Origin: Paramicrosporidium saccamoebae KSL3
Lineage: Eukaryota; Fungi; Cryptomycota
Direction of reading: 5' to 3'
Length of the DNA stretch: 7,849 bases
Assembly (NCBI GenBank): GCA_002794465.1
Contig: MTSL01000119.1
Span: 7,912-15,760 of the forward strand
Below the pieces are notes generated by a model, which saw only the letters and a list, made by a program, of their open reading frames with translations, had not been told where the DNA came from and made no database searches. Position numbers and translations under genes: made by a program. Numbering within the stretch: the stretch's first letter is position 1; the number at the start of each line of letters is the position of its first letter. Shown here piece after piece: positions 212 to 5,097 of the stretch.

Positions 212-2672
212 ATGTCCACAGTCCATCTTGGGACAGCATACCAACGGGAAATCTACACAGATTTCGTCACCGATTCCGGTTTTCTCGTCCTCGCCAAAGG
301 ACTCGGCCTATTTCAAATTGTCAAGGCGCTTGTCGAGCTGTATGCGTCACCAAAGATGCTCGTCTTTCTCCTGGGGGCGACACCAGCGCAGGAGGCTGTC
401 TTACAGCATCTCTTTACCGGCGGCGAGGAGCAACTTGTCGGCCATGTCAACTTTAAAATTCTCAAAAATGATACGCCATCCAAGAACCGGTATGGTGGCC
501 TGCAATTGATTGACGTATAGGTTGGAGACTTATTTGCAGGGAGGAGTGTTGTCCATTACCAGTAGAATTATGCTGATCGATTTGCTCAAGGAAAGGATCC
601 CGTCCCACATGGTCACTGGTATTATGCTACTAGAAGCCCATCGGGTGGCCGAATTCAGCTTGGAGGCCTTTATTGTGGAGCTATTCCGTTCCCGTAACAA
701 GGTCGGCTTTGTAAAGGCATTCAGCGACAGAGCCGAATCCTTGACGGGTGGATTCGCAAAAGTAGAAAAGACGATGAAGTTTTTGAAAACTCCCAAATTG
801 CTTCTTTATCCGCGTTTCCATGCGACTGTTAAATCGGATTTGGATTCGGTAGTCCTGCCAGTTGAAGAGCTCTACATCGGAATGACGAGCAAAATGACAA
901 TGATACAGATTGCCCTGATAGAGATTATCGAGTCTCTCCTAAATGAAATCATCCGAGCCAACCCGTCAGTACCCGCCATAGTCATTGCTAACGCATAGTT
1001 GGATGTAAAAGAGTTCAATTCGGAAACGGTAATTACCGACTCTTTTGATCAGCAAATTAAACGTCAACTGGATCCGATCTGGTATCGCGTCAGTCTAAAG
1101 AGTAAGCAGCTGCTGGGAGAAATCAAAGTCATTCGTGCGTTGTTAGAGTATTTAGTCGAGTACGATGCCATTAGCTATTGTAAATTTATCGAGACTATCA
1201 TTACTGCGGATGCCTCAGCCAGCAGTACAGGAGGGTTCCGATCATATTGGATCATGATGGACATTGCACAGTCTCTAATTCAGACTGCCAAGGATCGGGT
1301 GTTTACGCTGTCCAAAAGGGATGGAACCATGGAACCAACGGTTGAAAAGATACCCAAGTGGAAATCCCTAGAAAGCACACTTTGCAATTCCAAAGGAAAG
1401 CGAATTTTGATCATGGTCAGGGAGGAGCACACGAGACGCACATTGGCCAGGATAATATCGATGGGATATGACAATTGGCAGCAATCAAAGTATAATGAAT
1501 ATCTCAAGTGGAAGAAAAAGGCCCGTAGCCAAGGAGGACTCTCTAGTGGGATTTCAGTTCCCGAGAGCAGCGCAGTCCGTCGCAAAAGCAAACCAATGCG
1601 AACTGTCACATCGGAAAAGTTGCCAAACGAAGATCAGGTCGCTGTGCAGGATGATGATATTGAAGGCGACACGACAGAATTATTGCCCGAAAATGTCCAT
1701 ATCCATTGCTACGCCCATTCCAATGATTATTTTGAGGTTTTGGATTCCCTCAGGCCGGAAGTGGTGGTCATGTATGAAGGTGATTTGACATTTATTCGCA
1801 CTCTCGAACTGTACAGCCATCGCCAGCCCGATACGGGAATGTCAGTGACGATGCTCGTCTACAACGAGTCCATCGAAGAACAGCTTCAATTGCTGTCCAT
1901 CCGACAAGAAAAGGAAGCATTTGAAAACCTTATCAAGGCCAAAGCGACTATGGCACCTCTTATAAGTGATGCTCCCGCCGGAGAAGAGGATTTCATTGCG
2001 ACCCGGTTCCTGGGAATAATTGAAGATTCTCCGCGGACACTAATCATTGATATGCGCGAGCTCCGCAGCTCCCTCCCTTTTGTGCTGTACAAGCACAATT
2101 TTATCTTGGAACCGGTCACCATAGACGTAGGAGATTACATCCTCAGTCCGGAGATTTGTGTGGAGCGCAAGAGCACTAGCGATCTAATATCATCCCTTAA
2201 TAGCGGACGCCTACACAGCCAAACAGAGCAGCTATGCCGTCATTACAGTAAGCCATTGCTGCTCATCGAGTTTGATGACACAAAGCCCTTCTCTTTGCTG
2301 CCGGGCGACATTCGGGCTGACATTTCCATCAGCGACATTTGTAGTAAACTCTGTCTGTTGCTGTTACATTTCCCGACGCTGAAGCTGGTGTGGTCGCCCA
2401 GTCTGACGGCCACTGCAGACATATTCCGAGACCTAAAACGCGACCAGGAAGAGCCAATATTGCCAAGCTTGGAGGGTGTAGAGAGTGACCCCGTGGCACG
2501 AGACCTGCTGCTCTCATTGCCGGGTGTCACACCACAAAACTGTCACCTCCTTATGCGACATGTACGAGATATTCGAGCACTGTGCAGTCGAACACTGAAT
2601 GAGTTGGAGGATTTGCTGGGGAGGGAGAATGCGACAAAACTATACAACTTTCTACATGAGCCCTTCAATTAA
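212..2672 (+). CDS. ERCC4: XPF/Rad1/Rad16 structure-specific DNA repair endonuclease, join(212..489,521..968,999..2672), 799 aa
   Basis: Three consecutive track ORFs join through two short GT-AG introns into one protein. It has the XPF N-terminal helicase-like motifs (LAKGLG, YLQGGVLSITSRIMLIDLL, EAFIVELFRSRNKVGFVKAFSD, LYPRFH, QLDPIW), an intact ERCC4 nuclease core (IDMRE at ~2046-2060, GDYILSPEICVERKS at 2130-2174, DLISSLNSGRL) and a C-terminal HhH2 region (LLSLPGV...KLYNFLH). The spliced length of 2,400 nt is a multiple of 3. Confidence 0.96.
490..520 (+). other. Spliceosomal intron 1 of XPF, 31 nt, phase 2
   Basis: GTATGG...ATTGAC-GTATAG. Removal joins CG|G and gives KNR-LETYLQGG, collinear with the XPF motif NSR-YEVYTQGG. 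It also explains the frame change between ORFs 212..520 and 510..998. Confidence 0.92.
969..998 (+). other. Spliceosomal intron 2 of XPF, 30 nt, phase 0
   Basis: GTACCC...GCTAAC-GCATAG. Removal deletes the in-frame TAG at 996-998 and gives NPS|LDVKE, matching XPF NPSLEVED with no insertion. Confidence 0.92.
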
Positions 2673-2683
2673 AGCACTTTATT
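2668..2683. terminator. ATTAAA overlapping the XPF stop (+, 2668-2673) and AATAAA for Sec61-gamma (-, 2678-2683)
   Basis: AAT-TAA-A spans the XPF stop codon. TTTATT on the + strand lies 58 nt past the Sec61-gamma stop. Confidence 0.55.
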
Positions 2684-2740
2684 TCGAGTCGTCACTGTCC
2701 ATTTGTCCATAGGGCTGCTGAATTTGGTGCCTCGGCTGAA

Positions 2741-3017
2741 TTAGGACGCACCCCTACAAAAGAGTCAATCTCTCACTGAATGCGTACACAATAATGTTGT
2801 TAATGGGAATGTGGATAAGCTTGATAAAATAGCCTATGAAGCCCATAAGCAGGAATCCCATTCCAACGGCCTGCGCAATCTTTGCAAACTCTATGCGTCA
2901 GCACCACTGCCGTAAATTACCACGCTTATCGGGCTTGGTGCAACGCTGCAGCAGCTGCGTGCTGTCCTTGGTAAACTTGCGGGGCACCTCTAGAAGACTT
3001 GTCAAATAGTCACTCAT
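2741..3017 (-). CDS. SEC61G: Sec61 translocon gamma subunit (SSS1/SecE family), complement(join(2741..2753,2788..2890,2921..3017)), 70 aa
   Basis: The manual spliced translation is [70 protein letters not shown]. It contains the Sec61-gamma signature CTKPD..EF..IA and [19 protein letters not shown]. It is not in the ORF track because each exon is short. Confidence 0.97.
2754..2787 (-). other. Spliceosomal intron 2 of Sec61-gamma, 34 nt, phase 2
   Basis: Minus strand GTACGC...ATTGAC-TCTTTTGTAG. Removal restores the conserved C-terminus NNIIV-GAS*. Confidence 0.9.
2891..2920 (-). other. Spliceosomal intron 1 of Sec61-gamma, 30 nt, phase 1
   Basis: Minus strand GTAATT...GCTGAC-GCATAG. Removal restores PDKR-E-FAKIA. 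Confidence 0.94.
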
Positions 3018-3032
3018 TGCGCGACCGGGGCG

Positions 3033-3638
3033 ATGCGCTCACGCAGTACTGACTCTTCCGGCTTTTCCTCCTCGCCCAGTCCGGTCCGTGGACGCACTGT
3101 GGAGATGGCCGATGCAATGGAAGACGTAACTATTGCGTCAGATATGATGGCGGTGGAGGGGCTATCACGAAATGTTACTGAGACGCACATTCGGGAGATT
3201 TTTGGCAAATTTGGAACGATCCACAACGTGACCTTTGGACGGGGTTGGTGTCGAGTTCAATACGAAACGGAAACTGATGTGGAGGGTGCATGTAAGTATA
3301 TGAATGGCGGACAGTTGGACGGAAATTTACTGGAATGTCGACCGTACAAGGAGCAGAGGAGGACATTGCAGTCCCCGTTGCGTTCTCCTAGACAGAGACG
3401 GTCGAATTCGCGTCCAACAGAGTCCCCAAGACACCGCCGGTCGTATTCACGTCCAATAGATTCCCCAAGACAGAGTCGATCTTATTCACGCTCCCGTAGT
3501 CCTCCACGTCGGAATCAATTGCATTCCCGTACTCCTCCGAGACGGGATTATTCACACACACATTTCCCATCGCATTCACGGCCACGCTCTCGCAGTCCTC
3601 ATCGGCGTCATAACCGTCGTATGTACAGTCCCATGTAA
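3033..3638 (+). CDS. RNPS1: RNPS1-like RNA-binding protein (short S-rich N-terminus, one RRM, RS/RP-rich tail), 201 aa
   Basis: The RRM at 3147-3347 has GLSRNVTETHIREIFGKFG and KYMNGGQLDG, matching the RNPS1-type RRM (LTRNV..H..EIF..YG; MDGGQIDG). A Ser-rich N-terminus precedes it and an RS/SP-rich tail follows. An alternative in-frame ATG lies at 3105. Confidence 0.8.
   Translation: MRSRSTDSSGFSSSPSPVRGRTVEMADAMEDVTIASDMMAVEGLSRNVTETHIREIFGKFGTIHNVTFGRGWCRVQYETETDVEGACKYMNGGQLDGNLLECRPYKEQRRTLQSPLRSPRQRRSNSRPTESPRHRRSYSRPIDSPRQSRSYSRSRSPPRRNQLHSRTPPRRDYSHTHFPSHSRPRSRSPHRRHNRRMYSPM
3384..3500 (+). repeat. Three degenerate 39-nt coding tandem repeats (SPRQRRSNSRPTE / SPRHRRSYSRPID / SPRQSRSYSRSRS)
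   Basis: The units at 3384-3422, 3423-3461 and 3462-3500 share TCYCCWAGACA and TCGTATTCACG-like blocks at a 39-nt period. Confidence 0.85.
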
Positions 3639-3707: not shown

Positions 3708-4967
3708 TTAGTCATGGACGGCCGGGGCAAAACCGACACGATTCTTTCCCATGTCATAGACTGTGTAATAGCGACGCAAGAAAGCATCACCCACAATCCA
3801 CAACTTCATCCCGGGCAGATCCAAGCCCATAAAGGGAGAGATGCAACCACCTGATGTTTGAAGAATATAGTCGCTGGCCTCCAATGGGAACTTGTGGCCT
3901 CCAAATTCAAAGATCACGGGCGGCATTGTAGGGATAGCGGCGCAGTCTACAGTGTAGATGCCACGGAAGCCCTTAGTGGCGCCAATTTGCTGATTGATCA
4001 TATCCGAGACGGCCGAGGGGAGGGCAATCAACGAAGTGCCCGTATCAATGGCAGCAGTGCCCTTGATTCCCAAATCCTCATCACCCACAAAGAACGAATC
4101 GAGTGAGACCTCCCAATATCCCTTTCGGACCACTGGGGCATACTTGAGAGGACCCACAAACTTGTCCTCCTCCACACCACCCAACACTAAACTGCCACCC
4201 TCAGACTCCGCACTCTTGGAGAGGAAGAAGGAGAACAGCGGTTCGGAGATGAGGCCTTGTTGGTACAGATTGTAGAAGGGAGGCACTACACCGGCCACCG
4301 AGATGGTGTCGTAGCCCAGACCCATGATTCCGTCAAACTTGGCAAAGGCAAAGGTGAAGCCTGGCATCTTGGTTGTCTCACCAAAGCCCTGATCTTGGAT
4401 GGCCAGACCACCAATCTCCATCACGTCGTGGGACACAAAGCCCTCCACCGCTCCCGTTCCGTAGCGGATCTTGAACTCGGTGCGGTTGGCCACAAAGGTG
4501 CTCGACTTGTCCGAATCATAGCGACGATGCAACAGACACGCCAATGAAGAGCATTCCTTTGATGGCACCCACGTGTTGGATGAACCCGTGTCAAAGATTA
4601 CATTGAACTCTTGACGTGGACTTCCCAAGTAGATTGGTCCGTAGTATTGGGCGTCCATAAAGTTGGTCAATGGGACATGTCCCATTCCGTCCTTACGGAA
4701 CGGCTCTCCATGCAATCGCGTAAAGTACTTTTCAATAAACGCATCCTGCAGGCCGTCGATAATGTCCCAGATGTTGCTCTGCAGCTTCTTCAGCTGCACC
4801 TTGATAGTACGTCCCACCTCGCGTGCGTCGGGCAGCTCATCCTTGAAATCAAACTGACGGATTAGCTGGAGCCAGTCCTCTGGGATGCGCGAAGGCATCT
4901 CTGAAGGCCTGGATTCTTTTGCGAGCGCAGCGGTAAGGAAGAGTGCAGTCACTGTTTGCAGTTTCAT
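3708..4967 (-). CDS. PEP4: Pepsin-family (A1) aspartic endopeptidase, Pep4/saccharopepsin/cathepsin-D type precursor, 419 aa
   Basis: There are two catalytic motifs, DTGSS (DTG at 4584-4592) and DTGTS (DTG at 4038-4046). Also present are VPLTNFMDAQYYG, CSSLACLLH, the flap IRYGTG, KFDGIMGLGY and the C-terminal WIVGDAFLRRYYTVYD...RVGFA. The signal peptide MKLQTVTALFLTAALA places the start at ATG 4967; the track start at 5018 is GTG. There is no saposin-like plant insert. Confidence 0.93.
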   Translation of the reverse strand: MKLQTVTALFLTAALAKESRPSEMPSRIPEDWLQLIRQFDFKDELPDAREVGRTIKVQLKKLQSNIWDIIDGLQDAFIEKYFTRLHGEPFRKDGMGHVPLTNFMDAQYYGPIYLGSPRQEFNVIFDTGSSNTWVPSKECSSLACLLHRRYDSDKSSTFVANRTEFKIRYGTGAVEGFVSHDVMEIGGLAIQDQGFGETTKMPGFTFAFAKFDGIMGLGYDTISVAGVVPPFYNLYQQGLISEPLFSFFLSKSAESEGGSLVLGGVEEDKFVGPLKYAPVVRKGYWEVSLDSFFVGDEDLGIKGTAAIDTGTSLIALPSAVSDMINQQIGATKGFRGIYTVDCAAIPTMPPVIFEFGGHKFPLEASDYILQTSGGCISPFMGLDLPGMKLWIVGDAFLRRYYTVYDMGKNRVGFAPAVHD

Positions 4968-5047
4968 GTTGGTCACTACCCACTCGTTGTCGCTTAATAT
5001 ACTGCATTTATCTTCCACTTGCTAAAAATAGAATGGCAGCAATTATG

Positions 5048-5097
5048 ATTGGCTTTGACCGATCCAATTTGATTGGCCATTAGCCATTGGATATTGG
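5048..5097. promoter_or_regulatory. Cluster of five CCAAT boxes upstream of the protease gene
   Basis: ATTGG at 5048-5052, 5072-5076, 5086-5090 and 5093-5097, plus CCAAT at 5064-5068. They lie 81-130 nt upstream of ATG 4967. Confidence 0.55.

Follow-up and report, generated by a model that had tools for sequence, protein, structure and literature searches.

Introduction

Introns held at a lineage-specific minimum length are a known phenomenon, described in microsporidia, ciliates, nucleomorphs and mikrocytids, and not a new one. Such introns are 16–17 nucleotides (nt) long in mikrocytids, 18–21 nt in chlorarachniophyte nucleomorphs, 15–16 nt in heterotrich ciliates and ~25 nt in Paramecium (PMC10245619; PMC5014332). 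Microsporidia hold only tens of introns per genome, or ~0.01 per kb of coding sequence (CDS) (PMC8476143). Those of the intron-poor Encephalitozoon cuniculi genome are 22–76 nt long and carry strict donor and branch motifs (PMC3629993), and in Ordospora the mean intron length is 31 bp (PMC6944219). Microsporidian introns have been searched for with the pattern GTA[AG]GT ... TAATT N0-4 AG (PMC3486916; PMC3629993). Here we analyze ultra-short introns in Paramicrosporidium saccamoebae KSL3, an intranuclear parasite of amoebae that its genome paper placed as sister to Microsporidia (PMC5701793; accession MTSL00000000), starting from four introns in a 7,849-nt stretch of contig MTSL01000119.1 (positions 7,912–15,760, forward strand; GenBank assembly GCA_002794465.1), hereafter the window.

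The intron survey in PMC8476143 leaves out P. saccamoebae, and the words "intron" and "splice" are absent from the main text of the genome paper (PMC5701793). In the searchable literature we found no general description of introns in this species, the only mention being a 120-bp intron in its S23 gene (Whelan et al. 2018, PMC6349667). From 17 introns of P. saccamoebae and their counterparts in uncultured relatives, we propose that these are probably ordinary U2-type introns, reduced in length almost to the minimum that the P. saccamoebae spliceosome tolerates, and that the regular geometry seen in the window reflects this lower limit.

Results

Four introns in the window

A scan of the window for GTA...TAG segments of 20–60 nt with an internal YTRAC recovered two introns in a plus-strand gene for XPF/Rad1, an ERCC4-family nuclease, and two in a minus-strand gene for Sec61-gamma (Sss1). 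XPF exon 1 (212–489) is an open reading frame (ORF) starting from the ATG at 212, and the spliced gene product matches human XPF beginning at residue 9. Intron 1 (490–520; 31 nt, phase 2, GTATGG...TTGAC...TAG) has its candidate branch A at 513, which is intron position 24 and 7 nt from the 3' end; exon 2 (521–968) was delimited by alignment to human XPF; and intron 2 (969–998; 30 nt, phase 0, GTACCC...CTAAC...TAG) has its branch A at 991, position 23, again 7 nt from the end, with a terminal TAG that is an in-frame stop on retention. Exon 3 (999–2672) encodes the ERCC4 nuclease domain, by a Pfam match on the deposited product, and runs through the stop codon. Excising 490–520 and 969–998 joins the three ORFs into one XPF/Rad1 protein of 800 amino acids (aa), which aligns with human XPF (6sxa, 9pd3; E ~1e-69) with no gap at either splice junction, SKNR/LETYLQGG or ANPS/LDVKEF (the slash marks the junction).

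The Sec61-gamma gene lies on the opposite strand. Its exon 1 (2921–3017, ATG at 3017–3015) and exon 2 (2788–2890, encoding the transmembrane helix) were placed by aligning the spliced product to solved Sec61-gamma, and exon 3 (2741–2753), only 13 nt including the stop codon, by splicing reconstruction. Between them stand intron 1 (2891–2920; 30 nt, phase 1, GTAATT...CTGAC...TAG), whose branch A (2898, intron position 23) precedes the 3' end by 7 nt, and intron 2 (2754–2787; 34 nt, phase 2, GTACGC...TTGAC...TAG), whose branch A (2765, likewise position 23) precedes it by 11 nt. The spliced product of 70 aa aligned over its whole length with Sec61-gamma chains of solved structure (E=2.6e-27); its first junction, KPDKR/EFAKIA, is ungapped in that alignment, and the second, INNIIV/GAS followed by the stop, agrees with the conserved C-terminus NNI(I/L)VG. 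The Noc2, FAM210, RRM and aspartic-protease genes of the window each matched their orthologues as a single unbroken high-scoring segment pair, and the window therefore holds four introns in total.

A first-pass annotation, made by reading the letters of the window, had described these four as genuine, ultra-short GTA...TAG introns of 31, 30, 30 and 34 nt in a microsporidia-related organism. It had put the branch A at positions 24, 23, 23 and 23, with branch-to-end distances of 7, 7, 7 and 11 nt, and had read donor positions +4 to +6 as TGG, CCC, ATT and CGC. The scan returned the same lengths, ends, branch positions and donor triplets, the junctions proved ungapped against solved structures, and the source, P. 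saccamoebae, agrees with the expected kind of organism.

In three of the four window introns the 3' parts are nearly identical: 983–998 (+) in XPF intron 2 is TGCTAACGCATAG, similar to TGCTGACGCATAG at 2891–2906 (-) in Sec61-gamma intron 1, and 508–520 (+) in XPF intron 1 is ATTGACGTATAG. This common part could be an extended optimal branch–acceptor context (YTRACGYATAG) or could be chance; it is not common to the other introns sampled in the genome.

An enlarged intron set

The full sample comprises 17 introns from 44 kb on three P. saccamoebae contigs: MTSL01000119.1 (L001; 14 kb, including the window), MTSL01000202.1 (L006) and MTSL01000006.1 (L008). The last two were reached via the syntenic neighbours of the relatives described below. 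Junctions throughout the sample were checked by homology; a search for paralogues as a route to further P. saccamoebae contigs gave none that ranked high. Homology supports 15 of the 17 introns, and ORF logic only the other two, which are introns of 34 and 35 nt in uncharacterised genes on L008 and L006. In addition to XPF and Sec61-gamma, the sample includes a 31-nt intron in the gene for glutamate–cysteine ligase (GCS), whose junction CPIV/MALTAS is ungapped against yeast 3ig5; a 29-nt intron in a SpoU/TrmH methyltransferase gene, where splicing restores the conserved N-terminal EYLYG segment; a 33-nt intron in a PRA1-family gene, supported by frame logic and by position and phase conserved in two relatives; two introns of 35 and 31 nt in a TopBP1-like BRCT gene (for example, AAGIW/ILRPEF is ungapped against 3al2); and six introns, A to F, in a gene for a MeaB/MMAA-like GTPase (30, 33, 29, 31, 37 and 38 nt), of which five have junctions ungapped against 2qm7/2www and one is ambiguous. 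Altogether, 13 junctions were crossed ungapped in comparisons with solved structures (XPF 2, Sec61-gamma 2, GCS 1, MeaB 5, SpoU/TrmH 1, TopBP1-like 2).

The ambiguous case is MeaB intron E (L001 13070–13106), where the frame is restored only by removing 37 nt (GTACTC...TTTAG, with no YTRAY) or 16 nt (GTCCAAGTTACTTTAG). Compared with homologues, the 37-nt version leaves the product 3 aa short and the 16-nt version leaves it 4 aa long. We entered this intron as 37 nt; having no branch motif, it stands outside the distance statistics. A 16-nt intron at this site would be exceptional in the P. saccamoebae genome.

All 17 introns begin with GT and end with AG. The first three letters are GTA in 16 (the exception begins GTTTGA), so that A is found at +3 in 16 of 17; at the other end, 14 acceptors read TAG and three read CAG. 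Positions +4 to +6 of the donor have no consensus. A G at +5 is normally the strongest contact with U1 and U6, and it occurs in five of the 17; on average, donors match CAG/GTAAGT at 4.7 of nine positions, three of which are the GTA itself. A strict YTRAY lies 6–12 nt from the 3' end in 13 of the 17 introns, compared with a mean of 1.3 and a maximum of 6 in 5000 composition-preserving shuffles; among the other four, two have NTRAY and two (MeaB C and MeaB E) have no motif.

Judged by these signals, the sampled segments are U2-type GT–AG spliceosomal introns. It could be objected that they are assembly or sequencing errors, or parts of pseudogenes, given that they are known here from genomic sequence alone and that contig gaps lie nearby (the N run at L001 7850–7993), but this is scarcely credible in view of the uniform ends and the tenfold excess of branch motifs, of the conserved residues that excision restores without gaps, and of the nine introns whose orthologues, in relatives assembled independently, share their codon and phase.

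Intron density was roughly 0.4–1 per kb in the sampled contigs, with 13 introns in the 14 kb of L001, six of them in one 1-kb gene, and ~3 in the 22.7 kb of L008, on which the gene for an M16 peptidase runs for 3 kb without an intron. The L001 introns are all internal, and the genes that carry them function in DNA repair, protein translocation, metabolism and tRNA modification. Motif-free intron calling by ORF joining was tried in three versions and rejected, because the calls were ambiguous between adjacent GT/AG pairs and many false joins arose in non-coding frames; in its 29–34-nt bin, GT–AG pairs were 2–3-fold more frequent than control dinucleotide pairs (31 vs ~16; 16 vs ~5.6).

Spacing of donor, branch and acceptor

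The 17 introns are 29–38 nt long (median 31, SD 2.7). Branch points were assigned by taking the YTRAY closest to the 3' end or, if it was absent, an NTRAY, which yielded 15 assignable introns. The donor-to-branch distance in these ranged over 22–28 nt (mean 24.2, SD 1.74), with two introns at 22, four at 23, four at 24, two at 25 and one each at 26, 27 and 28 nt; the branch-to-end distance ranged over 6–12 nt (mean 8.1, SD 1.77, mode 7), with two introns at 6, five at 7, three at 8, two at 9 and one each at 10, 11 and 12 nt. Both distributions are right-skewed and look as if pushed against a lower limit, near 22 nt for the first distance and 6 nt for the second, and each distance correlates at ~0.7 with intron length.

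These distributions bear on a proposal of the first-pass annotation, namely that the donor-to-branch distance is near-invariant as the branch-to-acceptor distance varies, and that this fixed distance defines the splice sites. Stated as a mechanism, the P. saccamoebae spliceosome would pick a branch point ~23 nt from the donor in place of extended U1 pairing, leaving the branch-to-acceptor distance free. Several observations look favorable to such a measuring mechanism: the branch A is never closer than 22 nt to the donor and sits at 23–24 nt in eight of the 15 introns, no constraint is seen at +4 to +6 of the donor, and a non-orthologous intron of Mitosporidium daphniae, described below, has the same 23/7 form. 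However, in the sample of 17 introns the two distances are equally variable (SD 1.74 vs 1.77), and two introns have no branch motif where one is expected. The near-constant distance in the window is an accident of n=4.

Orthologous introns in uncultured relatives

A search with the aspartic protease of the window revealed many uncultured Paramicrosporidium-like relatives in public read-set assemblies, at 62–86% identity. The gene order FAM210-Noc2-Asp-RRM-Sec61-gamma-XPF-PRA1-GCS-SpoU-MeaB-bromodomain (at least 11 genes) is kept in L002 (Logan SRR21707646) and in L003/L004 (SRR28640811, SRR28640814) and partly in L005 (NCBI GCA_047514055.1). We placed orthologous introns with a purpose-written, protein-guided spliced aligner that had been validated on Sec61-gamma.

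Nine P. saccamoebae introns (both of Sec61-gamma, that of PRA1, MeaB A–D and F, and that of GCS) share codon and phase with introns of L002 and/or L003, and in each comparison the P. saccamoebae intron is the shortest. Giving lengths in the order P. saccamoebae, L002, L003, Sec61-gamma intron 1 is 30, 101 and 59 nt and intron 2 is 34, 64 and 48 nt; the PRA1 intron is 33, 57 and 43 nt; MeaB A is 30, 50 and 53 nt, MeaB B 33, 53 and 41 nt, MeaB C 29, 49 and 45 nt, and MeaB D 31, 49 and 38 nt; MeaB F is 38 and 56 nt, with no reliable call in L003; and the GCS intron is 31 and 50 nt and is absent from L003. The medians are 31, 53 and 45.5 nt, the P. saccamoebae introns being ~40% shorter than their orthologues. 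The relatives yielded 23 introns with reliable calls, of which every one ends in TAG and 21 begin with GTA, so the boundary signals are shared across the clade and the length is not.

Orthologous introns of 38–101 nt with the same GTA...TAG ends, in which branch candidates lie 15–46 nt from the donor, mean that the same spliceosome lineage copes with donor-to-branch spacings far from 23 nt. Since a 120-bp intron is reported for the S23 gene of P. saccamoebae itself (PMC6349667), we conclude from the two observations that the 23+7 form is a floor on length and not a fixed measure, and that definition of splice sites by a set donor-to-branch distance is very unlikely.

The same comparison separates two parts of what had been claimed for the donor. 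Its weakness was confirmed, GTA being the only conserved part. Its connection with the short geometry was not: in L003, with introns of 38–59 nt, donors match CAG/GTAAGT at 4.8 of nine positions and have G at +5 in three of 10, which is as weak as in P. saccamoebae, so the degenerate donor is uncoupled from the 30-nt geometry, a point against a measuring mechanism. In L002 the match is only a little better, at 5.5 of nine, and donor strength did not differ significantly between P. saccamoebae and its relatives (Mann–Whitney P=0.12).

Intron presence also varies among these genomes. Both XPF introns are absent from L002 (12547–15183) and L003 (13068–15794), where the ORF is colinear; either P. 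saccamoebae has gained them or the relatives have lost them. Conversely, introns at GCS codon 196, MeaB codon 21, PRA1 codon 112 and SpoU codon 77 are found in relatives and not in P. saccamoebae. Intron gain and loss is thus ongoing, and intron presence is polymorphic within a small clade.

Beyond this clade, the G-alpha gene of M. daphniae (JMKJ01000444.1) has a 30-nt intron (L007 6269–6298 (-); GTAAGAGGATCGATCAATTTTAACTTTTAG) that ends in TAG, with its branch A at position 23 and 7 nt from the end; the corresponding position is intronless in P. saccamoebae and its relatives. Annotated introns of M. daphniae were rebuilt by comparing the span of each gene with the length of its product, which gave a unique solution only for this intron and left multi-intron genes under-determined. 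Together with the Ordospora mean of 31 bp, the M. daphniae intron suggests that these neighbouring lineages share a lower limit on intron length.

In-frame stops on intron retention

A further explanation for the regular signals is selection against retained introns. If GTA(A/G), the TRA within the branch motif and the TAG at the end were favored because jointly they place a stop in every frame of an unspliced 30-nt intron, mis-spliced mRNA would be truncated or degraded. This would supplement a floor on intron length and would not replace it. An in-frame stop is present in five of five 3n introns and in 14 of the 17 overall, against 11.0 in shuffles (P ~0.04), and the stops arise from precisely the expected places: positions 2–4 in phase 2 introns (TAA/TAG), the TRA of the branch site and the closing TAG. 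Selection of this kind has been proposed for the tiny introns of Paramecium. In-frame stops in the 3n ultra-short introns of ciliates were reportedly described by Jaillon et al. in 2008. They are also treated in PMC5014332. However, the excess is marginal and the sample small, 3n introns are not depleted (five of 17, about one third), and GTA and TAG are equally conserved in the 38–101-nt introns of the relatives, where arguments from frame are weaker. The data thus carry a weak hint of added selection for stops on retention, and we consider it unlikely that such selection shaped these introns.

The deposited annotation

In every multi-exon gene that we checked within the 44 kb, the annotation deposited with GCA_002794465.1 mis-handles the introns. 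The affected regions are 2741–3017 (-) and 212–520 (+) in the window; 8174–8683 (-), 9619–9667, 11305–12132 and 12188–14142 on L001; and 7403–12704 on L008. The Sec61-gamma and PRA1-family genes are not called at all, and XPF is split into products of 102 aa (exon 1) and 676 aa. GCS is given a wrong intron of 49 nt (L001 9619–9667), with a wrong donor, and loses the conserved VMCPIV; SpoU/TrmH has its N-terminus translated from an incorrect frame; MeaB and the bromodomain gene are merged into a single 827-aa product; and a Sel1 gene is fused to the M16 peptidase gene across a 118-nt "intron" that looks like an intergenic spacer.

Other features of the window

Seven genes are listed in the window: XPF/Rad1 (+), Sec61-gamma (-), an RRM protein (+), a pepsin-like aspartic protease (-), Noc2 (-), FAM210/DUF1279 (-) and, as a separate deposited gene, XPF exon 1. 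The RRM protein (3033–3638 (+)) has a long Arg/Ser/Pro-rich C-terminal tail with repeated S-P-R-(Q/H)-R-R-S-(N/Y)-S-R-P units. By its sequence it looks like a splicing or exon junction complex factor of the RNPS1 or SR type, Pfam RRM_1 being its sole recorded match. The aspartic protease is a single ORF (3708–4967 (-)), and among public contigs exactly one encodes it, MTSL01000119.1, whose last 7849 bases make up the window. The motif TGATTGGC, a CCAAT box on the opposite strand, occurs twice at 80–110 nt upstream of its ATG (5046–5053 and 5070–5077 (+)), and GATTGG-like motifs also stand upstream of GCS/PRA1 (L001 ~8750) and of G-alpha (L006 ~4585). TGATTGGY was not significantly enriched in the window, with three occurrences where 0.9 would be expected; three were also reached in 16 of 200 shuffles. 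The N run at L001 7850–7993 is a scaffold gap of 144 N directly past the left edge of the window, between XPF and PRA1, and a second gap lies at L006 2557–2691.

Discussion

The reading that we favor, in which ordinary introns have shrunk to a floor, can be put as a mechanism. Genome compaction and deletion bias would strip dispensable intron sequence down to two steric minima: ~22–23 nt between donor and branch, which may be required for the 5'-splice-site and branch-site complexes to fit on one RNA, and ~6–7 nt between branch and acceptor. Introns would then accumulate at a floor of 23+7=30 nt, mimicking a constant distance, while some would keep a longer spacing in one segment or the other. 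The spliceosome would recognize such very short introns by intron definition, and donor positions +4 to +6 would contribute little.

Several points weigh against this reading and bound the confidence that we place in it. The concentration of eight of the 15 assignable introns at 23–24 nt leaves room for that spacing being actively preferred, over and above a mere lower limit. The splice junctions are predicted from genomic sequence and the branch points assigned by motif, MeaB intron E is ambiguous between 37 and 16 nt, and the steric minimum is one that we infer from general knowledge of spliceosome architecture. The 17 introns come from 44 kb only and are skewed to conserved genes; the P. 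saccamoebae genome is ~7 Mb, of which the sample is ~0.6%. As to the remodelled or compacted spliceosome that the first-pass annotation suggested, an Rfam scan of the 44 kb returned no small nuclear RNA and no other family, and our literature search found no published spliceosome inventory for P. saccamoebae.

A bolder version of the idea, which we offer tentatively and consider rather doubtful, is that P. saccamoebae, Mitosporidium and Microsporidia share a clade-specific hard limit (~22–23 nt plus ~6–7 nt), set by a slimmed spliceosome that reads the 5' site through GTA alone, without U1/U6 pairing at +4 to +6. If this were true, P. saccamoebae would be an intron-rich intermediate with hundreds to thousands of introns from which to measure the minimal geometry, and its published gene set would be substantially under-called, its introns having been overlooked by annotators. 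Inferences of gene loss or gene content for P. saccamoebae could be affected by the mis-annotation that we describe. The relatives, with the same gene order and introns of 38–101 nt, form with P. saccamoebae a clean natural series in which the course of intron shrinkage, and the point where it stops, can be studied.

P. saccamoebae joins introns of microsporidian size, at fairly high density and with a degenerate donor, at a key position beside Microsporidia. Its introns resemble those of Microsporidia in size class, in their GT–AG ends, in donors that begin with GTA and in a branch point a few nucleotides upstream of the acceptor. However, most microsporidian introns are found close to the 5' end of a ribosomal-protein gene, whereas those of P. 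saccamoebae are internal to housekeeping genes and far denser. None of the 17 donors matches the microsporidian GTA[AG]GT, and the branch motif is a looser YTRAY; with its branch A 6–12 nt from the end, P. saccamoebae shows the closeness typical of E. cuniculi, yet is looser than TAATT N0-4 AG.

With the tiny-intron systems of mikrocytids, nucleomorphs and ciliates P. saccamoebae shares many introns, minimal signals, a tight cluster at a lineage-specific minimum length and, as a hint, in-frame stops in 3n introns. It differs from them in a higher minimum (29–31 nt), in a range of 29–38 nt as opposed to windows of 1–4 nt, in retaining a clear yeast-like YTRAY, and in the coexistence of longer introns such as the 120-bp intron of S23. 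Ordinary short fungal introns form the third comparison: Rozella allomycis has 2.5 introns per kb CDS, and the uncultured Paramicrosporidium-like relatives L002 and L003 have the same intron positions, phases, GTA...TAG ends and intron-definition architecture, from which P. saccamoebae departs in that the branch has been drawn to within 6–12 nt of the acceptor.

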